This document shows positions 8,531-64,000 of a stretch of 64,000 nucleotides of DNA, one piece after another. The notes under the pieces are model-generated. The model was not told the DNA's origin and did not search any database. It worked only from the letters and a program-made list of their open reading frames with translations. Positions within the stretch are counted from its first letter, which is position 1. Each line of letters begins with the position of its first letter. This stretch comes from Hydrolagus colliei (lineage: Eukaryota). Location of the stretch: assembly GCA_035084275.1 (NCBI GenBank), contig CM068742.1, positions 154,814,001 through 154,878,000 of the forward strand, in the 5' to 3' direction. The translations under genes and the position numbers were made by a program.

Positions 8531-8822
8531 CTGTGACAGGAACAGGATTGGAATACTGAAGCGCAGTCAGTGTGACACAGTACATGTTACACGCATGTGA
8601 GGAGCCTTGGCAAATAGACATTCCCACAGTGACAGGTCAGTGTACAGCACAGCCCTCCCTCCCATCAGCCGCTCACTCACTGTCCCTGCCAGCCCCTGTT
8701 CCACACCTTCCTTCACTGGGAACACTCGCTCCCTATTGCCCGTCCTGGGCGAGACACTTCCGACTGACTCCGGCACCAGTGAGGATCATCACGTCTCATT
8801 CCCACTTCCCATCGTTCCTCAC

Positions 8823-9212
8823 CTGTAACATACAGACATGTATCTGGGCGAGTTTCAACCTTTCCATCGTCACCCTGGAGCTCCACACGACAGGTGAACA
8901 CCTTATTATTGTCCTCTCCCCTCAGCTGGTTTATCTGTATTGTAGCGTCGTTCCTCCTTGGGTTCCCAATCACTCGGTGTCGATCTCCCTCCTTTACATC
9001 AATGACATTTTGATACTTTCCCTGTGAATCTGGCCTATAGTTTGTATATTTAAAATACACAGGACCAGCCCGGCCTCCCTTCCACATGATGGTGATGTTG
9101 CCTGTGTATCTGGGGTGAGGGTGAGTGAACTTGCAGTACATGATGACTGGTGACCCTAACCTGCCAGTCACTGTATCAGGGATCTCCATTGTCCAGCCAT
9201 TCTTACTGATCC
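8823..9212 (-). CDS. SIGLEC15-like: SIGLEC15-like copy B, V-set Ig exon (390 nt, phase 1-1)
   Basis: Same splice sites as copy C; 21 of 390 nt differ by hand alignment; FTCRVE retains the Arg; frame open. Confidence 0.85.
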
Positions 9213-10829
9213 CTGTGAGGACACACATGGTGTAATGTGAACCAGAACACAATATAAAAGCAAACAGGCAACACTGAGCTTGGACAAGAGCTTGGTTAGG
9301 TCACAGCTGGGAGTAATGTGGACAGTTTGGGATCCCCTGTAAAAAGGATATAAAAGCGATAGAAAAGATGCAGCGTAGATTTCAGGTGCAACCAGAGACT
9401 TGAGAATTTGTTTTTTTTTACATTTGCTCAAAAAGGATTATCTGGTAAAGGCTCAAAGAATTACACCAGTGTATTTTCGGCTGTTCAGCCTGTTAGTCAC
9501 AGAAGAAATAAATCTAAATCCATCACAAAAAATGAACTAAGAAGAGGTTAGAAATCCTGTCTTTACACAGAGGAGCTGCGATTGTCTCTGCCACAAACTA
9601 GACTTGAGTTTGTCTAGTTAATAAGAATAAGTGCTATATCAAATGCAATGATTATTATTCTTCTGATTATTAACCACAACTTTGCATTTCATAGAATCAT
9701 AGAATCATAGAATCATAGAATTTTACGGCACAAAAGGAGGCCATTCGGCCCATCTAGTCTGTGCCGGCTCTTTGAAAAGAGCGATTCAATCCCACTGCCC
9801 TGCCCGCTCCCCATAGCCTAATAGACCCGTTCTCCCTAAATAAAGATCTAATTCCCTTTTAAAAGTTGTTATCGAATCAGCCTCCACCACCTTTTCAGGC
9901 AATGCATTCCAGATTCGAACAACTCGCTGAGTGAAAAAAATTCTCCTCAGCTCCCCTCTACTGCACCTTGAAACTATTTTAAATCTGTGACCACGAGTCA
10001 CAGATTCACCCACGAGTGGAAACAGTTTTTCTCTATTTGCCCTGTCGAAACCCCTCAAACAAACAAACAAACAAAACTTACATTTATATAGCGCCTTTCA
10101 CGTCGAGAGGACATCCCAAGGCGCTGTACAGTCAGGTAGGACAAGAGCAGGGTGGGAAGGATCAGGCAGGATGAAGAATAGTAGGAAAAGTAACTGTATT
10201 AGTGGGCGAAACGCGGCAGCCAAATTGCGCACAGCAGTGTCCCACAATCAGTGACGGAAGTGGGACTAGGGGCAAAAGGGGGTAAAGAAGCAAAAGGGGA
10301 GGGGTCGAGGCAGGGGAAGAAAAGCAGGAAAGTCGACTGTATACTTGTGGGCGAAACGCGGCAGCCAAATTGCGCACAGCAGTGTCCCACAAACAATCGC
10401 GAAAATGGGGCCAGGGGAGAAAGGGGGAAAAGAGGGTAAGGGGGGAGAGGGAGGGAAAGGTGGGATGGGTTAGGGTTAGGGAGGAAGAGGGGGGAGAAAG
10501 GGGGGTAAGGAAGAGAGGGAGGGAAAGATGGGTGGGGGCCAGATCAGGAAGAGGGAAGAGGGAGGGAAGGGGGAAAGGGAGGAGAGAAAGTGGGGAAAGG
10601 GAGTGAGGGAAGAAGACGATGGGGGCAGGGGTGGGGGGAATCAAACAACAATAATAAACAACAAAAGCAATAATATTAACAACAAAAACAGCAACAAACA
10701 ATAACCAACAATCGTCCAACAATCGTCCAGCAACCACTCCCTGTCCTCGCCGCCCGCCCGGACCATCCCTGAGATGGCGGGAAAACAAGGTCCCAGTCGT
10801 GGTGTCAGGCCCCAAAACCCACCGGCTCC

Positions 10830-10968
10830 TCAGTCGGTGAACCCGGGGACTCTGTGATGGCCCTGGCACCTCGGACATGGTGTGTCTGGCCGGCTCGCAC
10901 AGCAGCAGCAGCAGCAGCCCGATCACCGTCTGGATCTCCCGCCACGAGATGATCCGTCGCTTGCAGCA
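10830..10968 (-). pseudogene. Histone H2B C-terminal fragment (diverged, 1-nt frameshift)
   Basis: [35 protein letters not shown] aligns by eye to H2B [36 protein letters not shown]. Confidence 0.75.
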
Positions 10969-10969
10969 C

Positions 10970-11257
10970 CTGGGCGCTCTCCCCCTCGCTCTCCCCCTCG
11001 CCCTCCCCCTCGCTCTCCCCCTCGCCCTCCCCCTCGCTCTCCCCCTCGCCCTCCCCCTCGCCATCCCCCTCGCCCTCCCCCTCGCTCTCCCCCTCGCCCT
11101 CCCCCTCCCCCTCGCTCTCCCCCTCGCTCTCCCCCTCGCGGAAGACGTGCGCCACCCGCTGCCTGAGGAAAGTGCCGAGGTCGCGGCCTTCCCAGGTCCT
11201 GTCGAGGGGCCGCTCTTCGCACAGCCGGAGGAAGCGCCGACAGCGAGTGGCCGCCAT
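10970..11257 (-). pseudogene. UQCC2: UQCC2 N-terminal (first-exon-sized) fragment with internal repeat expansion
   Basis: [43 protein letters not shown](..)SAQ versus recalled human UQCC2 [46 protein letters not shown]. Confidence 0.85.
10976..11137 (-). repeat. 12-nt minisatellite GAGGGGGAG(A/G)GC, ~13.5 units
   Basis: Directly visible 162-nt tandem array; source of the (EG)n, (RARG)n, (LALP)n and (PPRS)n ORFs. Confidence 0.95.
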
Positions 11258-11259
11258 TC

Positions 11260-11357
11260 CCTCCGCGATACTCCCCGTCGTGCAAAAAGATGGCTTCGTT
11301 GGCCGACTGCAAATAGAGGAAGAAGCGGCAGCGATGGAAGCCGCCTCCAGCTGGTGG
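11260..11357 (-). pseudogene. PEBP-family (PEBP4-like) fragment
   Basis: Frame [32 protein letters not shown] versus recalled PEBP4 [33 protein letters not shown] (12 of 17 identical over the GxHR motif). Confidence 0.65.
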
Positions 11358-14209
11358 GCTGATCTTATAAACATGATCTTATAAACCTCTATTAGGTCTC
11401 CCCTCAATCTTCTCTGCTCCAGAGAGAATAACCCTAGCCTATCTAGCCTCTCCTCATAGCTGAAGTCCCTCAATCCTGGCACCATCCTAGTAAATCTTCG
11501 TTGTACCCTTTCCAATGCCTTCACATCCTTTCTGTAGTGTGGTAACCAGAATTGAACACAGTATTCCAGCTGAGGCCTCACCAAAGTCCTATAGAGGTTA
11601 GTCAGCACTTCCTGAGTTTTGTACTCTATACCCCTATTTATAAAGCCTAGTATCCCATATGCCTTCTTAACAGCCTTGTCTACCTGTCCTGCCACCTTCA
11701 ACGAGTCACTAACACAAATCCCCAGGTCTCTCTGTTCCTTCACACCATTTAAAATTGTACTATCTAGCCTATATTGCCTCCCTTCATTTCTTCTCCCAAA
11801 ATGCATCACCTCACACTTCTCTGCATTAAACTTCATCTGCCATGTGTCTGCCCACTTTACCAATTTGTCTATATCCTCTTGCAGATGGCTACTATCCTCC
11901 TCACTGTTTACTATTCTCCCTAACTTAGTGTCTTCTGCAAACTTGGAAACTGTACTCCCTACACCCAAGTCCAGATCATTGATGTAGATTACAAACAGCA
12001 ATGGTCCCAAAATTGATCCCTGTGGCACACCACTGCTCACTTCCCTCCAATCTGAAAAACAGCCGCTCACTACAACTCTCTGCTTTCTGTCTCGCAGCCA
12101 GTTGTGGATCCACGCTGCCACTGTCCCTTTTACGCCATGGGCCTTTAATTTCATAATACGTCTCTTATGTGGCACTTTGTCAAATGCCTTTTGAAAGTCC
12201 ATGTAAACTACATCAACTGCGCTACCATTATCCACCCATTCCGTTACCTCATCAAAAAATTCTATCAGATTTGTAAGGCACGATTTGCCTTTAACAAATC
12301 CATGTTGACTGTCCTTTATTAGCCTATTTCTTTCTAAGTGAAGATCTACCTTGGCCCTGATTATGGACTCTAGAAGTTTGCCCACTACCGACGTTAGACT
12401 GACTGGTCTGTAGTTACCAGGCTTGTCCTTCTGCCCCTTTTTATACAAGGGAGTAACATTAGCTATCCTCCAGTCCTCTGGCACGACCCCTGTGTCCAAG
12501 GAACATTGAAAGATCATGGCCAGAGTCCCTGCTATTTGCTCCCGTGCCTCACTTAGTAACCTAGGGTGCATCCCATCCGGACCAGGTGACTTATCCACCT
12601 AGAGCAACGTCAACCTTTTTAGCACTTCCACTCTGGTTATAATTATTCTATCCATTTCTCCTACCCTCTCCTCTAATACCATGGCATTGGCTGTATTATT
12701 TTCTTTTGTGAAGACAGAGGCGAAATACTCATTCAGTACATCAGCCATGCCCTCTGCCTCCACAATGAGATTTCCTCCTAGGTCCCTAATTGGCCCCACC
12801 CTATCCTTGACCAACCTTTTACTCTTAATATGTTGGTAAAAAACCTTAGGGTTCCCCTTAATCTTACTCGCTAATTGTTTTTCATGCAGTCTCTTTGCCC
12901 CTCTAACTTCCTTTTTTAGTTCTATCCTACACTTCCTATATTCTGCTTGGTTCCCTTCTGAATTTTGAGCCTGACACTTATCATAAGCCTCTTTTTTTTG
13001 TTTTATTTTGGCCCCGATTTCCTTAGTCATCCAGGGAGGTTTGGATGCCTTACATTTCACCTTTGTGGGGATGCTTTTGACCTGTGCCTGAACAATCTCC
13101 TCTTTGAACGCTGCCCACTGCTCGTTAGTTGTCTTACCTGCCAATTTTTCTTTCCAATCCACCTTGGCTAGGTCCCACCTCAACTCATTGAAATTAGCCC
13201 TTTTCCAGTTGAGTGTCCTCACCTGTGATCGTTCCTTATCCCTTTCCATAATTATTCTGAATCTAACGATATCTTGGTCACTATTCCCTAGATGCTCACC
13301 TACAGAAACCTGTTGAACTTGCCCTACCTCATTTCCCAAAACTAGATCCAGCAATGCTTCTTTCCTCGTTGGACTGGAAACATACTGATCAAGAAAGTTG
13401 TCCTGCACACACTTCAGGAATTCTTCTCCCTCCTTGCCCTTTACTCTACTATTCTGCCAGTCTATGTTGGTATAGTTGAAGTCACCCATTATCACTACTC
13501 TATTAGTTCTGCATTTCTCCGTGATACTCTTGCAGATCTGCTTGTCTATCTCCTCCCCACTATTTGGTGGTCTATAGTATACCCCTAACAGTGTAACTGC
13601 ACCTTTTTTATTCCTCATTTCTAACCAGATAGATTCGGTTTTTAGTCCTTCTTCCACCTCGTTCCTTTCTAAGGCAGTCACTGAGTCCTTCACTAAAATT
13701 GCCACCCCGCCCCTTTTTCTCCCTTCTCTATCCCTCCTGAATACATTATAACCAGGAATGTTCAACTCCCATTCCTGCCCATGCTGGAGCCAAGTCTCTG
13801 TTACTGATGGAGTTTCCTGTCACATCTATGAGAAGTTTCAAAGCTCTTCACAAAATATACTGTAGAAGTGAATTAAGCACAAAAAAATTGCACTACAGTA
13901 TGCTATGTAAATGTAAATTGTTGTTGTTGAATTCACTGTATATTTTCTGGGTGTAGGGAAGCAGCACATTGCACACATCCCACAAACAGTAGTGGATTGA
14001 TTAACCAATTTTTAATCATTTATTTTTGAATTAATTATTATCAAGGAAAAGCTATCCGCCAATCAACTAACAACCAGGTTCCTACTTACTGCTGGGTAAA
14101 CAGAGGAATGTTAAGTAAGGAAACTTACCCAACATTTCCTCTGCTGGGAATCAAACTCAGGTTTCTCTCACCTGCGAGGCGAGTGCTATTAATACAGGAG
14201 TCCACAGTA

Positions 14210-25315: not shown

Positions 25316-25668
25316 CTTTGGGTATAAAGAAACACAGTTAATCTCGCTCAGTAGACTCCTCACAAAATGGGATCTGGATTAAGAAAGCTCTTTGGCCAAT
25401 CTGATTGTATTCCTCCAGTGTTGGCAAAAGAGTCAGAGGATAGAGGAGGACAATTGCTTTTACACAACAAGTGTTTTTTTCAGTCTGGAATGGAAAGAGG
25501 TGCCTAGAATGATATGGCATTAGCCAATTCATCCCAATGAGAACCTCATATATTACTCTCTAGTCTCTGGTAACATGGTTATATGTGTAACCATGTCACA
25601 CGTTATATTCCACTGCATCGCATCCAAACCTATCGGAATCTTGACACAGTAACAGAGGTTTCACTTAC

Positions 25669-26190
25669 CAACGACTCGCAGCCACAGCAGATTCTGTGTC
25701 ACATGTTCCTGTGTAGTGTGTCCACGAGTCACAGGTCCCAGCATCGCATGTTCCGGTGTAATTTGTCCACCAGTCACATGTGCCTGTGGCACATGTTCCT
25801 GTGTCGTGTGTCTACGAGTCACATGTCCCAGCATCACATGTTCCTGTGTAGTGTGTCCACGATTCGCATGTCCTTGCGTCACATTTTCCCACAGTGTGAA
25901 CGTGATGTGCACATGACAGAAATACTGGTCAGTGTCATTTAATTCCAAGTCCCTGATCCTCAAGGAACCATCTCCATCCCGCACATTCCCAACCAGCAGA
26001 TAGCGATTTTCATTGTTCAATGGCTCTGACTTCCCAGAGTTGTCAAAGGTTTCATTAATAATGGGACGGCTTTGTGGACTCCTTCGCCTCCAAATGACAT
26101 TGACGTTACTTGGGTGTGTGCCTGGCACGGTGAAGGAGCAGGGCAGTGTGGCATCACCTCCCTTTGTACCAGTGATTGACAGGAGCTTCC
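25669..26190 (-). CDS. SIGLEC15-like: SIGLEC15-like copy A, second V-set exon with repeat insertion (522 nt)
   Basis: Acceptor tcatgaag|GGAAG, donor TTG|gtaagt. Has ATLPCSF, VIWRR, RYLLVGN, GSLRIRDL, DTDQYFC and G strand LWLRVV; frame fully open. Confidence 0.82.
25691..25870 (-). repeat. Coding minisatellite, 4 x 45 nt (15-nt subunits)
   Basis: Encodes HANRGHTTQEHVMLG / HVTRRHTTQEHVPQA / HVTGGQITPEHAMLG / PVTRGHTTQEHVTQN. Confidence 0.9.
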
Positions 26191-26229
26191 CTTCATGAGA
26201 GAGGAATATAATTATCAGAATGACCTTCA

Positions 26230-27600
26230 GTGAAAGCCATTGGGTAAAGGAGCAGGTTAGCAATCAGGGGTTTACTGGCCCATCGGCAACTTCCCTTTCC
26301 TATCTAATATCCTTGAAACAGCCATTGCCTACCAGCTTTGCTCTTTCCTCTCATCCGACTCCTTCCATGAGCCCCTCCAATTGGGCTTCCGTGCTGCCCA
26401 CAGCAAAGAAATTGCTCTAATTGAGATTACAAATGATATCCTGACCATTTGTGACCAGGGCTTCCTCTGCCTACTCATCCTCCTTGAATATCCACTGCAT
26501 TTGACACAGTGGACCATTCAATCATCCTCCACTGCCTCTCCTCCCATCTCAACCTTCAAGGTTCTGTCCTTGACTGATTCAGGTCGTACAATTCACACTG
26601 TCTCCACTTTGTTTCTTTTGCACCATTCCTCAGGGCTCTGATCTTGGTCCACTCCTCTTCACCCTCTACTTGCTCCCCCTCAATGACATCATCCTCAGCC
26701 ACAGGGTAAATTTCCACATGTATGTGGATGACACCCAACTCTATTTCTCTCCTTCAACCCTCAACCCCAGGATTACCAGAGGCCTGATTGCCTGCCTGTC
26801 CAACATTGAGTCCAGGATGAGCATCAACTTTCTTCAGCTGAATGTCAGCAAGACTGAGGCCCTCCTGATTGGCTCACGTTAGTGCCTCCGCACCTCAGGC
26901 ACTGGGAGCATCAACATCCATGCCTGCATTCCATCTCATGAAGCCAGTCAGGAACCTAGGCATCTTGTTGTCCCTGAACTGTCCTTTCTCCATCACATCC
27001 ACCCCATGACCAGCACTCACTTCCACCACATCCATAACATTGCTAGAGTCCTCCACTACTTCACCTCTCAGGTTGCCAAAACCCTCACCAATGCATTTGT
27101 AACATCAAGGCTTCACTAAGGAATCTCCTTCCTTGTCGGACTGACCAGCCATTCATCCAAAACTCTGCAGCTCGTGTCTTCTCCCACACCAGGCTCTGTG
27201 ACTGCATCACTCCCATCCTCACCCAGCTCCATTGACTCCCATCCCCAAGAGGATCAAATTCATGATCCTCATCCTCACATTCAATGCCATCCCCCTTCCT
27301 ATCTCTCTGAAACCCTACCAACCTGCCCGCCTCCTCTGTTCAGCGGGTTCCAGTCTGCTCCATTTCTCCCAGCCTACTATCGGTGGCCAGGCTTTCAGCC
27401 TCTCTGTCCCCACACCCCGGAATTCCATCCCACAGTCCCTTCACTTCCTTTCCTCCCTTGCCTTCTTCAAGCTCGGTCTCATGACCCTCGTTTTCGATCG
27501 TGCCTTCTGCTTCCCTCCCACCTGCCATTCCCCCTAACCTGTCCCTACCCTAGGCTCAGGTCCTGACCCCTGATTGTTCAGTGCCTTGAGACATTTGGTA
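26230..27600 (+). mobile_element. L2 LINE, degraded RT and 3' region
   Basis: [30 protein letters not shown] and [11 protein letters not shown] motifs in broken frames. Confidence 0.88.
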
Positions 27601-33077: not shown

Positions 33078-34813
33078 CCTCTACGGTTCAGGTGGAATTT
33101 TAGACTGATTAATTCTGTTCTGTGGGTTTTCTCAATTCCTGTGAGTACTTTGTTAGAGAGGTGGATTCAAGCCCCACCTCCTCTCACTTAACCGTTCAAC
33201 TGCCAGATATACGTGTACTGTACATCTTACTTTGTTAAGAGTGCCTGCCACATCAAAACGCCTCAGAGCTTCACATTTCGCTGCTGTCAAGTGTAGTCAG
33301 ACCAACTAAACGTGGACCTGCTGTACACCGAATGAGATGTAATAAATAATAATAATAATCTTTGAATTTGAAATAGCGCAATTCACATCTTCTAGACGTC
33401 TCAAAGCGCTTCACAGAATGTACTGTAAAGTAAATTTACTCTATATTTGTGGGCAAAACGCGGTAGCCAATTGTGCACAGCAGTGTCTCACAAACAGTCA
33501 CAGATTGAAAATGACCAATTTATTATAGGGTTTTTTTATGGATTATTATTAAGTGTACGGAGTAAGGAAGCTTTCCCAAAGTTTGTACGCTTGTAAGGCG
33601 AGTGCTCTAACCACTGAGCTAACTATAACCAGGTTCCATGGCACTATTAGTCAAGAAGCGAGTTTGGTATCCTTAATAATAATCCCCATGTTGCCTGCTC
33701 CAATATCGGTGGTCAGGCATACAGCCTTTCTGCCTCACTCTCTAGAACACTATCCTAGAGCCTCTCTTCCACACTCTCTCCCTTGCCTCCTTCAAGGCCC
33801 ATCTTGTGATCGCGTCTTTGGCCATCTTCCGTCCTCCACCCTTCCTGCCTTCACCTCTCTCTGAAATCCCAAACCCCAGCTTGTGTGCAAACCCTTCACT
33901 ATCTACCGCCTTGGGATGTCCTCACGATGTGTAAATCCAACTGTAATTCGGAGTTGTTGTAAGGATTATTATCTTTAATGGCTGACAGGACCTGGAGTTA
34001 ACATCTCATATGAGAGATGGCACCTCCACCAATGCAGTGCTCCCTTCCTTTACTGCACATGATCAGTAACAAAATGACACTTCTATACTGCATTTCACGT
34101 CAGGAGGACATCCCAAGGTGCTGACAGGTTACTGCTTCAGACCCGAGCTAAGGACGGGGGTGCCGTGGGGTGGAGGAGTCGACGATGGGACCATCGAAGA
34201 GGAGTGGTTGTCTCAGTCTCTGCCTGGATTGTAAATTAAAGTCCCTTTAATTTAGAGGCAAGAACCCTGTGACCACAGCCAGGCATGACACATGACAACC
34301 TCCCTGAATTTACAGGAAATGCTTTTGCTTATCTGTGACGCAAAGACTGCCATTTGCATTGTAAAAAAAAATCAGTGATTTACTCAGTCATTCACTTAAT
34401 CAGTTACAATAAAAGCACACTGAAATACAGTACTGTACTTCATATCTGGAGCAGATTGTAAGTTCACAATCTAATTCCCATGATTAAAGGACTATTTACC
34501 CGTGCTTTCAAACAGTTTTTTTTACAACTTTAACAATGTACATAATGAGATACAGATCTGATGACCCCCTACATGGAGTCCTGCAGCTCAGTGGTTAGAG
34601 CGCTCGCCTTACAAGCATGAGACCTGTGTTCAAATCCAGGCAGAGCAGGGCGATAGCTTGAGCAAGTTTCCTTACTCCATATTTCTAATAATAATCCCTC
34701 AAAAACAAATTTGGTCACTCAACCCACGACTGTTTGTGGGACACTGCTGTGTGCAATTGGCTGCCAGGTTTCGCCCACGGTATATTCTGTGAAATGCTTT
34801 GAGAAAAGCTCTA

Positions 34814-43025: not shown

Positions 43026-44609
43026 AACCCCCTCACTTTCACATCCCTGCTCCACCTCCCCCTAACCCCACTCTCAATATGAGCCCAAGCCCCACATTGA
43101 AAAGTTTGAGGTCACAGTTCAGGTTGAGACTCGAAACAACAACAACAAAAATTACATTTGTTTAGCACTTTTCACATTGGGAGGACACCCCATCAACTCT
43201 AGACGTTGATGGGGGACGAGTGCTGTGTTGTTGGAGGTGCCGTCTTTCAGATGAGACGTCCTTCACCTCATGGATGTTTGTGATTCTGGGAAAGACGATC
43301 CTATTGGAAACGAGAAGGGAGTTTGTTTGAGTGTCCGGGCCAACGATCCTCCAGTTTAGTCGGTCGTTCACCTCTTGTGTGGAGAAGGTTACCTTGCTGT
43401 GTGTACAATGGCTGCTGCTTTAGCTTACAAATAAACATCCAGGTAAGTTTACTCAATTGCTTGTGTCTGTGACTGCAGATGTTGGGGCTTGATAGGGAGA
43501 GAGAAACTTATACAAAGTAATGTTATTAAGAGGTAAGGAGAGAATTGAGGGAAATCAGCTATGATATGAGACTTTGTTGGAGGAAATTCAATGGCCTGAG
43601 TTGCTTCTTTTAATACAGGCATTACATTTTCCAACGCTAGATTTCTTTTTAGAAGGTAATATTTTGGGGTACAGTCTCCCAGGATGGTGGACTTAAACTT
43701 AGACTTTCATCTAGCAAATTCTTAAGTACAATATGAATTTATAGCTGTACGATAATAATCCTTGCATTTGATATAGCGCTTTTCACATTTTATCAACGTC
43801 TCAAATCGCTTCACAGAATGTATTGTAAAGTGAATTAACTGTATATTTGTAGGCAAAATGTGGCAGCTAGTTAATTGCACAGCAGTCTACCCAGAAACAG
43901 TCATGGATTGCAATTACCAATTTTATTATTTTAGCTTTTTTTGGAAGGATTATTATTAGGCGCGTGTGTGTGTGTGTGTGTGTGTGGAGTAAGGAAACTT
44001 GCCCAAGGTTTCGCCCCAATCTTCCTGGATTTGAACACAAGTCTCACACTTATAAGGCGAGTGCTCTAACCACTGAGCTACAGGAACTCTTACAGAATCT
44101 CTTCTGTTAGTTAGACATCTTCAGGTAGTTGTTCTGTTGTAATCCAACTGCTTTGTATTGGGCCCGCTGATCCCAATTAACTCATATAGATACAAACATA
44201 AACAGATACAAACATTAATTCCACTTATAGGGAACAAAGATTGTCCCCGAAGACAAACCCCACCCGCGCCCCCCCAAAACCTCTTCTAGGCCAGAATTTG
44301 GCAAAGGGAAATGCAGACCTGCGTCAGGTGGGGATGGCCTCTTCAGCAGTGCATGCCCGGCCCAGGTGCTCTGGTCAGCTCTGCATTACAGTGTCTCTGC
44401 TTCCTCTGTGTGAGGGCAGCTCACACTCTCAATACTGATCCCAGCCAACAGAGAGTTCAAATCATAGCTGCTACCAGTTCAATCTTTCCCTTAATGCCCA
44501 GATATGGGTGAGATTTTGGTGTGATCCAAAGACGAACCACAACGTAGAACGTTTCTGATAGATGCCAGCTCAGAACAGAGACTATACTTGATCTTAGCGA
44601 AGTAGAAAT

Positions 44610-49071: not shown

Positions 49072-49368
49072 GAGTCCTGCAGCTCAGTGGTTAGAGCTCT
49101 CGCCTTAAAAGTGAGAGACCTGGATGAAATTCCAGGCCGGGTGAAACCGTGGGCAAATTTTCTTACTCCACATGTCTACTAATAATCCCTCAAACAAAAA
49201 TTGGTCATTTCAATCCATGACTGTTTGTGGAACAATGCTGTGCCCAATTGGCTTCTGCGTTTTGCCCATACATTTACAGTCAATTTACTTTAGTATATTC
49301 TGTGAAGCGCTTAGAGACATCTAGAAGACGTGGAGAGCGCAATGTCAAATGCAAGGATTATTATTATT
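49072..49368 (+). mobile_element. tRNA-derived SINE (dominant family, dozens of copies across the window)
   Basis: Head ggagtcctgcagctcagtggttagag, body ttgggcaa..ttactccaca, core ctgctgtgcgcaattggc, L2-like tail with (ATT)n. Further copies at 2280-2600(-), 46720-47480(-, nested), 53132-53450, 54816-55070, 56075-56382 and 62843-63165. Confidence 0.88.
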
Positions 49369-51427
49369 AGGTCGCGCCTGAAGACCTTCCTCTTCGACCT
49401 TGCCTACAGCCACCTCCCCCTCTCCTCCGCTTGGAGTCATGCTTCCATCACTGCTAAGCGCTCTGGGACACTACACTTAGGGGCACTATATAAATGCGTG
49501 TTGTTTGGGGTGAACATGTTATGCTATGCTTCTAATGTCACATTGGAAGAAGTGTTAAAATATCACAGGAAACCGACTCGATTTTACATTCATCCCATGT
49601 GGGATGAATGTAAACTTATTATTTAGTCTGAAACTTTGTCTAGATTTTGATAACAGTCGGGATATATGTAACACTTACTTTGTTCCAAGCAATAGTCGAT
49701 CATGTTCTGTGTTGTGTGTTAACTTTTAACCTATTTAACCTCACAAGCATGTCACTGGAGGGCAGCCAGGCAGATTGCCTCGCTATCAGAACAGACTGCG
49801 ATATCTTTTATTCCTCAACAAAGTCCCAATCTGTTCCCGATATCCTTCCTGTCATTGCAACTTTTCATATTTGGTCAACAAGGTCAACAAGGCCATAATT
49901 TCCAAACCAAATTATTTAGAGTTCCACATTAGCAATTTCTATTTGTCTGGTGTAGAATAGTATGTGGAGGGGTGGATCCTGCTTATCTATATCTGGGGAG
50001 TGTTAAGTACAGACAGGTAAGAATTGAGGTTAAACCAGCTAAATCTGCACAGTTTACCACAGCAGAGCACTGACAAGCTTTGCGTTACTTGTCCAACTAT
50101 GACCACCCTACGACCTCGCTAAACAAATGTAATTTTGTTGTTGTTGTTAAGATTTTGGTTTGCAGGGATAACAGGAGCTAGCTGGGAATACCATGTGCCT
50201 AGTGTCTCTTCTACCAAGTCCTTCCAATGAGCCATGCTGGCTGATCTGTTATTAGCAGTGTACTATACAATAGTCTAATTCAGAAACTAGTGAGACTACA
50301 AAGATCATCCCAATTCTAACATTGCATGGTATGTCACCTTAGAGTTAACGTTCTCTGAAGCGACTCTGCCTACCTCTATCCCTACCGTAGATGGATAGTC
50401 ATTGAAGTTTATGGGAGTGAAGTGATTTGGAATGAGAATTACCAATGGAAAAACCAAACTGAGATCCTCGCTGCTTCATCAATTAGACACTAAAAATCTC
50501 ATGGCACTGGAGAGGCAGCTCAAAAAGAAAAGCAAGTTTCTCGTCGATAATCCTCCAGATAGAATTGATCCTTGTTGCACTTAAAATGGCAGCAGACTTT
50601 GCCCAGGATTTTGTTTTGACAGTGATTACAGCTAAAAGCACTTTGACTTTGTGGCATGATAAGGCGGTTTAAAAATACAAAAGTCTTTTGTCTAAATCTG
50701 GAGTTTCTCAGAATAAGCAGCTTTTATTCTACAAATGGGATCACAAAGTACATTTCGACTTAATTTGCCCTACCTACCACTGTTCCCACTTGCTTAAAAT
50801 TTAGAGCATGTAATGCTGCTATATACCTGATTCCGCACTCTCACTTGTTAAATGCGTGTTTGTGAAATGTAGGGAAAGGGTTGTGCTTTGTCTGCTGTTG
50901 ATTAAATTCTCTCATTTTGTCTCTCTCTAGGCTGGCAGCAAGTGCCTCCCCTCGTTATCTCCCTTGGACGTGATGTTATTTGGGTGACTGCATTCGCTAT
51001 CTGAGCAAAGTTTTATGTCCTCGTGATGCCCTTGCGCCCAACTCTGCTTAAAACCTCCTCTTTGGGCGGTTTGTTTTCCTTGGAACAATTTCACAAGTAG
51101 TTGATGCTGAATCTTCTAATTCTGTTTTAATGAAAGGCTTACACTCGACAGAAAGTTCTTGTTCCAAATTGCCTCCCCTCGCATTCCCACGTGAGTCTCT
51201 CAGTGATTTGGCAAAGTCTTGGTGCAGGGAATGTTAATGATTCCCGCACTCTGTGCCCAGCGATCGCAATGTTAACTTTGAGGTGTACTCCAACCCTGAT
51301 CAGACTGAACCCTGTCTCTTCCAACTTCTCATGAGCTGCCTGAGCACCTGGATGTTAGCAGCTTTTGCTGGACTCAACGTCTTGGGTGCTCGCTGTCACT
51401 TTTAGCCAAAGATCTAGCAACCGGGAA

Positions 51428-62094: not shown

Positions 62095-62467
62095 CTTTCG
62101 CCTTTCCCTCTGCTCCCTTTTCCTCCATTCTTTCCCTCTCCCCCTTTCCCCCCTTCCTTCCCTCTTTCCCCTTACCCCCCTTTCTGCCCCCATTTCTCCC
62201 TGATTTTAACCCCCCACCTTTCCCTCCCTCTCCCCCCAATCTTTTCCCCCTTTCTCCCCTAACCCCACTTCCACGACTGTTTGTGGGACGCCACTGTGCG
62301 CAGTTTGGCTGCTGCGTTTTGTCCACAAATTTCCAGTCTCCTACTCTCCTTCCCCCTACCCCTCGCCTGCCCCCCCACTACCGTTTTGGTCCCTACCTGA
62401 ATGTTCAGCGCCTTGGGACATCCTCCCGATGTGAAAGGCGCTATATAAATGTAATTTTGTTGTTGTT
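62095..62467 (+). mobile_element. Mosaic element: pyrimidine tract + SINE core + pyrimidine tract + L2 tail
   Basis: Interrupts a minus-strand SINE head; same 3' architecture as 10056-10620. Confidence 0.65.
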
Positions 62468-62742: not shown

Positions 62743-63214
62743 GTGAGTTCTGAATCACCATAGACCACATTACTCCATGCTTGATATCTGTACTGGGCTT
62801 ATTCGCACCAGCAATATAAAAACATTGGACATGGGAAGATAGGGAGTCCTGTAGCTCAGTGGTTAGAGCGCTCGCCTTACAAACATAAGACCTATGTTTC
62901 GAATCCAGGCAGTTCATGGTGAAACCTTGGACAAGTTTCTATACTCCACACGCCTAATAATAATACGTACAAAAATAACCTATAATAAAAAATTGGTCAT
63001 TTCAACCCACGGCTGTTTGTGGGGACGCTGCTTTGCGCAATTGGCTGCCGCATTTCGCCCACAAATATACAGTCACTTCACTTTACAGTATATTCTGTGA
63101 AACACTTTGAGACGTCTAGAAGACGTGATAACGATCAAGTGCACAGATTAGGATTATTATTATTTATTGTCAACTGGCTCAGTTGGTAGCATTCGCCTTT
63201 AAGTCAAGTCCCAT

Positions 63215-63580
63215 AGATTCATAGAATTTTACGGCACAAAAGGAGGCCATTCGACCCATCTAGTCTGTGCCGGCTCTTTGAAAAGAGCGATTCAATCCCA
63301 CTGCCCGCTCCCCATAGCCTAATAGACCTGTTCTCCCTAAATAAAGATCTAATTCCCTTTTAAAATTTGTTATCGAATCAGCCTCCACCACCTTTTCAGG
63401 CAATGCATTCCAGATTCGAACAACTCGCTGAGTGAAAACATTTCTCCTCAGCTCCCCTCTACTTCGCCTTGAAACTATTTTAAATCTGTGACCACGAGTC
63501 ACAGATTCGCCCACGAGTGGAAATAGTTTTTCTCCATTTGCCCTGTCAAAACCCCTCATGATCTTATAAACCTCTATTAT
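63215..63580 (-). mobile_element. Young CR1 3' fragment, near-identical to 9700-10055
   Basis: Only scattered mismatches by eye; shows the uninterrupted EVYKIM-RGFDR junction. Confidence 0.92.
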
Positions 63581-64000
63581 GTTGGGATCTGGCCTCACAC
63601 TATCTAAGCTAACGAGCATGACCGTGGAGGGCAGCGCTGGGGGGATTGTTGCATTGTTGGAGGTGCTGCCTTCAGATGAGATCTTAAACCGAGGCCCAAT
63701 CTGCCTGTTCAGGCAGATATTAAAGATCCTGCGGTGCAATTCGTAAAGAGAATGAGTTTCTCTCTCCCAGTGTTCTGGCCAGCAATCCTCCAAATAAAAT
63801 CGGTCACTCAAACCACGGCTGTTTGTGGGACGCTTCTGTGTGTGACTAGCTGCCATGTTTTTCCCATAGAATACACGCTCATTTTACATTACAAGATATC
63901 CTGTGAAGCTCTTTGAGACGTCTTGAGGATGTGATGAAGCGCTATATCAAAATTGACAGATTATTATCATTATTATTATGACATTCCCAATGCAGTATGG

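Follow-up and report, generated by a model that had tools for sequence, protein, structure and literature searches.

A stretch of 64,000 nt from Hydrolagus colliei (GenBank assembly GCA_035084275.1, contig CM068742.1, positions 154,814,001 to 154,878,000; hereafter the window) carries a composite insertion of about 1.3 kb in which fragments of a PEBP4-like gene, of UQCC2 and of histone H2B are joined to a short interspersed nuclear element (SINE). The element occupies window positions 10056–11371, has its sense strand on the minus strand and splits open reading frame (ORF) 2 of a CR1-type long interspersed nuclear element (LINE) precisely, as one insertion. From 5' to 3' it consists of a short filler, the PEBP4, UQCC2 and H2B pieces, about 190 nt of GC-rich and TTG-rich sequence, a headless SINE, a stem-loop tail and (TTTG)5. 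All gene pieces have the same orientation and are directly abutted. A preliminary description of this DNA had proposed a composite retro-insertion with these three gene fragments; its parts were all found on the minus strand within 10056–11371, and the empty site and homology tests described below bear out a SINE-tailed composite. We favour, at about an even chance, the reading that a non-autonomous composite captured host exons through splicing, one round after another, much as SVA_F1 did, and was then retroposed as one unit.

The insertion site could be read from three uninterrupted CR1 copies in the window, which align as ...GGTTTATAAGATCATG^AGGGGTTTCGAC... and represent the empty site. With GATCATG^AGGGG as its core, the insert was placed exactly between ATG and AGGGG; the host reading frame enters the insert and is picked up again at position 10055 as RGFDRANREKLFPLV. 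Such a clean break in a known sequence, where the tail and (TTTG)5 abut the target, is the arrangement expected of target-primed reverse transcription (TPRT). At the 5' junction, Tandem Repeats Finder (TRF) detected a perfect tandem repeat with a 14-nt period (GTTTATAAGATCA, 1.9 copies, 100% matches, 11360–11386). This repeat was considered as a target-site duplication (TSD) and rejected, since both copies lie on the 5' side; the 12-nt copy at the junction is read instead as templated filler from 5'-end joining.

The interrupted CR1, with endonuclease (EN) and reverse transcriptase (RT) domains, had been described as nearly intact and young. Its ORF2 of about 2.7 kb was found to be disrupted only by the insertion and by one in-frame stop (12599–12601), and its (TTCTATGA)4 tail was located at 9689–9721. 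Host-derived changes were polarised by comparison with a 95%-identical sibling (63212–63582), with two older CR1 copies as reference. Two were clear, and at most 8 were counted in about 350 nt, equal to 0.6–2.3%. By this measure the host CR1 is young, in agreement with the earlier description. The same sibling, which is the closest relative of the host and lies on the minus strand, is 5'-truncated just ~25 nt upstream of the insertion position of the composite, probably by coincidence.

The frame-1 peptide of the UQCC2 piece matched the Pfam family UQCC2_CBP6 (PF20180) at 28.8 bits against a cut-off of 27.9. Its sole match among 5.8e9 proteins was Callorhinchus milii UQCC2, with 86% amino acid (aa) identity and E 6e-14. 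The C. milii gene, contained in a genomic locus designated L001, adjoins ITPR3, and its exon 1 aligned to the insert with 90.2% nt identity over 132 nt (insert positions 115–246, L001 10001–10132). The exon 1/intron 1 boundary of C. milii was placed by tblastn after ..REGESTQ, at CAG/gtaacc (slashes mark exon boundaries), and homology in the insert stops at ..GESAQ, at CAG/GTGCTG, the last base of coding exon 1. Comparison with L001 revealed neither exon 2 nor intron 1 downstream of the GT. At its other end, homology begins at the ATG, perhaps with ~7 nt of 5' untranslated region (UTR); the GAGGGAA region of the PEBP4/UQCC2 junction zone is weakly similar to GAGGACG, with which the 5' UTR of C. 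milii UQCC2 ends. These alignments indicate that the UQCC2 piece is a complete coding exon 1 ending exactly at the splice donor.

A minisatellite inside this piece arose from the last codons of UQCC2 exon 1 (EGES). Differences from C. milii were found at 14 of 138 nt, 3 in synonymous and 11 in non-synonymous codons, including W16R in the conserved CEEWP motif. They look neutral, with non-synonymous and synonymous rates about equal (dN ~ dS). The substitutions cluster at A sites, with 8 of 25 A's changed (6 of these A>G) versus 6 of 113 other sites (excess p 6e-4). In the alignment all 14 parental CpGs of exon 1 are retained and 3 have been gained. The 632-nt gene block has a GC content of 68.5% and a CpG observed/expected (o/e) ratio of 0.81, compared with 0.28 for the host. 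This retention and the contrast in CpG o/e suggest that the 5' gene block has behaved like an unmethylated CpG island. Together with the A>G changes in the HRYQ codons of PEBP4 (11300–11320), the substitution and CpG pattern of UQCC2 (11126–11257) could come from adenosine-to-inosine editing of the element as an RNA intermediate, from GC-biased evolution or from a long history without methylation.

The PEBP4-like piece gave 13 identities in 18 residues with human PEBP4 (BLASTP, E 2e-8); the human query was confirmed as PEBP4 by a separate search. Against six PEBP4s, hhalign returned a probability of 95.5% and E 1.4e-8 over 32 columns, and the PEBP4 score was reached by 0 of 2000 shuffles. The PP-x-G-x-G-x-HR-Y motif region is collinear with PEBP4, and the otherwise invariant Y and Q of HRYQ are mutated to C and R, both through A>G. 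No match was obtained in Pfam (51-aa piece; PF01161), PDB or word-index searches, and a HMMER scan of 1.84e9 representatives with a 38-aa piece was empty at E ≤ 0.001. At the nucleotide level the piece aligned clearly to a real PEBP4 exon, that of Galeopterus, which reads cag/CCTACCAG...ACTCGAG/gtaagg in the genome and starts cag/CC. Exon-skipping PEBP4 isoforms of at least seven mammals remove exactly aa 134–172. Relative to the exon, the piece is 5'-truncated by ~15 nt, so that the first 5 codons are missing, and it ends ...GAGTATCGC G (CGC G), aligned to the exon end ...ACTCGA G/. It thus derives from one exon and ends at the splice donor or within a few nt of it.

The frame-2 peptide of the H2B piece aligned to residues 85–114 of H2B. 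BLASTP gave 19 of 41 identities (E 1e-6), the PDB matches were all H2B C-termini (E 0.3–1), and the score was reached by 0 of 5000 shuffles. The match is collinear past the probable frameshift, and that continuation alone was not significant by shuffling. Pfam Histone gave no match, and no histone 3' stem-loop was found after the H2B stop position (Rfam, E ≤ 10). A perfect (CTG)6 at 10900–10918 stands in place of the H2B LLLPGE codons and is the second small repeat expansion in the gene block. For a nearly invariant protein the piece is heavily decayed, roughly threefold more than the UQCC2 piece. A six-frame search of 90 kb placed every PEBP4 and H2B match within the insert, in collinear order. 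Taken with the Pfam, protein and nucleotide matches of UQCC2, these results uphold the three identities first proposed for the gene block, including that of H2B for 10968–10830.

The remainder of the element is repeat-derived. Repeat analysis confirmed the TTG-rich tract, the CT-rich (pyrimidine) tracts, the two SINE cores and the terminal (TTTG)n of the preliminary description. The two cores stem from a tandem duplication of ~145 nt, whose units are 80.5% identical (29 of 149 positions differing). Neither ARAGORN nor Rfam found a tRNA head in the insert; a standard SINE with this core has one. Judged by the missing head, the insert is also without an RNA polymerase III (pol III) promoter. Its conserved tail, taken for that of an L2 in the preliminary description, is common to ~20 SINE-like copies in the window and to copies in C. 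milii L001, most of which end in (TTG)n. SINE identity is ~84% between window and L001 and ~86% within the window. The tail differs from the 3' end of the host CR1, (TTCTATGA)n, and no LINE carrying it was found within the window or L001.

Two kinds of SINE elsewhere in the window have sequence in common with the insert. A monomeric headless relative with CT-rich, core and tail parts (62097–62465, plus strand) is 76–78% identical to the 3' half of the insert; (TTG)4 forms its end, and no gene fragments precede it. tRNA-headed SINEs at 34578–34800 (plus), 49081–49360 (plus) and 44020–44087 (minus; Rfam tRNA 31–41 bits) have the same core but another tail that terminates in (ATT)n, so that at least two tail families have this core in common.

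Table 1. Parts of the composite insert, in 5' to 3' order, and of the interrupted CR1 (window coordinates).
Feature	Position	Strand	Basis or remark
Templated filler, 12 nt, TTTATAAGATCA	11360–11371	-	Exact duplicate of host sequence 2 nt upstream; empty-site alignment
PEBP4-like piece, 3' ~95 nt of exon encoding SPPA..GFHR(Y>C)(Q>R)FFLYLQ	11265–11359	-	BLASTP, hhalign, shuffles, exon alignment
PEBP4/UQCC2 junction zone, ~7 nt (GAGGGAA region)	11258–11264	-	Assignment ambiguous
UQCC2 coding exon 1, ATG to ..GESAQ, minisatellite included	10970–11257	-	Pfam, C. milii match, nt alignment to locus L001
Minisatellite (GAGGGGGAGAGC)n, 12-nt unit, 14.2 copies, 87% matches	10975–11139	-	TRF; alignment
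Decayed histone H2B C-terminal fragment, ~aa 84–125, with (CTG)6 and probable frameshift near end	10827–10969	-	PDB, BLASTP, shuffles
GC-rich stretch, ~87 nt, after H2B stop position	10740–10826	-	Neither a histone stem-loop nor a remnant LINE/SINE tail detected
Decayed TTG-rich tract	10640–10739	-	Same repeat type as the (TTG)n ending other tail-family copies
Headless SINE body, CT-rich tracts and two conserved cores (10327–10411, 10182–10266)	10137–10639	-	Repeat comparison
Conserved 3' tail, ~60 nt, 8-bp stem AGCGCCTT / AAGGCGCT	10076–10136	-	Copy alignment
(TTTG)5 terminal microsatellite abutting target	10056–10075	-	TRF; empty-site alignment
Host CR1-type LINE, 5' side of insertion, ORF2 with EN and RT	11372–13765	-	ORFs; Pfam Exo_endo_phos_2, RVT_1
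Host CR1, 3' side: ORF2 C-terminus resuming at AGGGGTTTCGAC, 3' UTR, (TTCTATGA)4 tail	9686–10055	-	Repeat and copy alignment

The contents of the insert differ in age from its host and from one another. The 29 differences in 149 positions between the SINE units compare with at most 8 in 350 for the host (p 3e-10), and the UQCC2 piece is 10% diverged over all sites (p ≤ 4e-4 versus host). Given host divergence of at most 2.3%, the decay of the H2B piece, the divergence of the SINE dimer and the decay of the TTG tract imply content that predates this insertion. From sequence divergence, at least these three parts are older than the host CR1. The insert sequence was, on the same evidence, already old when copied here and moved as one unit using its terminal tail, much as had been surmised at the outset.

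Two of the three gene pieces are single exons ending at donors and the pieces are of unequal age, which favours stepwise splicing over template switching. A trapped exon is expected to end at its donor without intron or next exon; UQCC2 does so exactly and PEBP4 within a few nt. This was the outcome of comparing segment ends with parental exon boundaries, a check suggested with the preliminary description. We infer splicing as the joining mechanism and propose the following order of steps, in which the 5' half of the element would have been assembled stepwise before the present insertion. In the first and presumably oldest step, a headless CT-rich SINE would have gained the 3' third of H2B and ~190 nt of downstream sequence, most likely because transcription read through from an H2B locus (5' transduction), or else by a template jump. 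In the second, best supported step, a sense-oriented copy in UQCC2 intron 1 would have been transcribed from the UQCC2 promoter. Splicing would then have joined UQCC2 exon 1 to an acceptor within the H2B-derived sequence, expected as ..YAG directly 5' of GTGCTGCAAGCG, and the chimeric RNA would have been retroposed. The GC-rich, CpG-island-like exon 1 probably became the element's own RNA polymerase II (pol II) promoter, and the exon end grew into a variable number tandem repeat (VNTR). The third step would have taken a copy inside a PEBP4 intron and spliced it behind the 'HRY' exon. Finally, a LINE RT that recognised the SINE-type stem-loop tail and (TTTG)n would have copied the ~1.3-kb composite into the young CR1. 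Reverse transcription presumably halted inside the PEBP4 exon, giving the 5' truncation, and the cDNA would have been joined via the 12-nt filler with essentially no TSD.

Serial template switching, one of the mechanisms first suggested for this mosaic, would have RT begin on the SINE tail and jump to H2B, UQCC2 and PEBP4 RNAs in turn during TPRT. The pieces are indeed same-sense and abutted with a LINE-recognised module at the 3' end, and bi- and tripartite chimeras from double template jumps are documented (PMC2104539). The UQCC2 piece begins at or close to the 5' end of the mRNA, as RT run-off would predict, and no poly(A) separates H2B from the module after it, in keeping with a histone mRNA that is not polyadenylated. 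However, splice donors, and not mRNA 3' ends or arbitrary points, mark the ends of two of the three upstream pieces, and mature UQCC2 mRNA, as the target of a jump, would have contributed exon 2 too. The equal ages expected of a chimeric retrogene made in one event were not found either: H2B shows about threefold the decay of UQCC2, the SINE units are 19.5% apart and the host has changed by at most 2.3%. Unequal decay, together with parts that predate the host CR1, excludes a single event at this site, and we consider serial switching unlikely as the assembly mechanism. A possible variant is that jumps onto free 5'-exon splicing intermediates took place in earlier generations.

The gene pieces and the SINE may instead have been adjacent already at one old locus, brought together by DNA rearrangement or nested insertions, so that a read-through transcript with the SINE tail at its end was retroposed once, with no family and no exon trapping. 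That only one copy was seen across the window, L001 and two metagenome scans is consistent with such a one-off retrocopy, as is old content in a young insertion; the TTG-rich tract between gene block and SINE suggests an older nested or tandem insertion. Against this, DNA juxtaposition leaves donor-cut single exons without intron sequence unexplained. Nesting would predict a decayed LINE/SINE tail ahead of the TTG tract, and none was found: similarity there did not exceed that of shuffles. No PEBP4 or H2B sequence was found within ±10 kb of C. milii UQCC2. We regard a one-off origin of this kind, whether through rearrangement or through nesting, as improbable. For simple DNA duplication of neighbouring genes the absence of PEBP4 and H2B from the same ±10 kb led to rejection; contiguous parental genes, which the preliminary description had named as an arrangement that would refute it, were not found there. 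A misjoined assembly or an accidental resemblance to PEBP4 and H2B appears very improbable. The PEBP4 and H2B matches are not significant in database-wide searches and the structure was read from the assembly. Against an artefact or chance stand the strong pairwise, profile and shuffle statistics, the confinement of all PEBP4 and H2B matches to collinear positions in the insert, the clean junctions within a known repeat with the host ORF resuming exactly, and a window without any N's.

Several points weigh against stepwise exon trapping. H2B genes have no introns, so that capture of H2B needs another mechanism than splicing. The splice acceptors could not be reconstructed, and the end of the PEBP4 exon, taken from amniote genes, is accurate to within a few nt. 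No second composite copy was found in the 64-kb window, the 26-kb C. milii UQCC2 locus, the protein database or two metagenome scans. Intron 1 of C. milii UQCC2 (L001 10139–12973) held only unrelated SINE pieces and nothing H2B-like as a relic of the element. When A sites are left out, the age contrast between UQCC2 and host falls to p 0.003–0.12 and is not significant from UQCC2 alone. The flanks of the insert have at most 2 nt (TG) in common, and there is no canonical TSD. CR1/L2-type insertions are frequently without regular TSDs, so the missing duplication does not exclude TPRT.

Other features of the window include two V-set immunoglobulin ORFs on the minus strand (471–1232 and 25661–26263; Pfam 25.2 and 50.8 bits) and a 646-nt duplicate pair (647–1291 and 8704–9345, 93.8% identity). 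The window may lie within a cluster of V-set (Ig-superfamily) gene segments. On the plus strand, an ORF at 51365–51910 matches the sodium:solute symporter family (PF00474, 27.6 bits), its residues 65–131 aligning to the N-terminal start; this ORF is possibly an exon of an SLC5-type gene.

Among known systems, SVA_F1 and pt_SVA_D6 of hominines offer the closest parallels. SVA_F1 acquired MAST2 exon 1, and pt_SVA_D6 acquired STK40 exon 1 and exons of 8 other genes, by splicing; this was inferred from the coincidence with exon 3' ends, and the first exons, which are GC-rich, serve as promoters within the element (PMC6139936). Like these elements, the insert is a non-autonomous composite, presumably moved in trans by a LINE, with an internal VNTR, a complete GC-rich host first exon that ends at the exon 3' end and so implies splicing, and extra upstream exon fragments of other genes with variable 5' truncation (PMC6139936). 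The SVA-like character suggested in the preliminary description is apt in these respects, as modules of unrelated origin, an internal VNTR and a SINE/LINE-recognised 3' module are all present. Unlike SVA, the insert resides in a cartilaginous fish, has no flanking TSD, contains a histone fragment and was seen in one copy. Where SVA uses L1 through SINE-R and poly(A), the insert has as its 3' module a SINE that carries a stem-loop tail and (TTG/TTTG)n and is putatively under stringent CR1/L2-type recognition.

U6-L1 chimeras and the MINE/WEIRD elements of Magnaporthe likewise join unrelated cellular RNAs in the same sense, have a 3' part recognised by a LINE and were inserted through TPRT (PMC2104539). 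In those cases junctions are not tied to exon donors and the parts come from one event, whereas the insert has two donor junctions and parts that differ in age. With tRNA-derived SINEs of the same genome it shares a ~65-nt core present in ~20 places at 80–96% identity, the same kind of putative LINE-derived tail and a microsatellite end. It differs from them in lacking a tRNA head and in having CT-rich spacers, a duplicated core and 630 nt of host-gene-derived 5' sequence.

A wider proposal, which we put forward tentatively and hold to be rather doubtful, is that holocephalan genomes contain an SVA-like family that is still active. Its members would be headless SINEs, moved by a stringent LINE of the L2/CR1 type, with a trapped CpG-island first exon, that of UQCC2, as pol II promoter, and would go on capturing host exons through splicing. 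If so, a working exon-shuffling vehicle would have arisen separately, in a setting remote from the primate L1/SVA system. Detailed accounts of composite retroposons that trap exons come mainly from the L1-driven hominid SVA, and LINEs that recognise a specific 3' tail, as CR1 and L2 types do, are thought to yield few host-gene retrocopies. A SINE-tailed element with spliced host exons would show how genomes with CR1/L2-type LINEs can still move exons. The use of a first exon as promoter would then be a convergent solution, in a lineage ~450 million years from primates. If the family exists, its copies would be dated, ordered snapshots of stepwise exon accretion.

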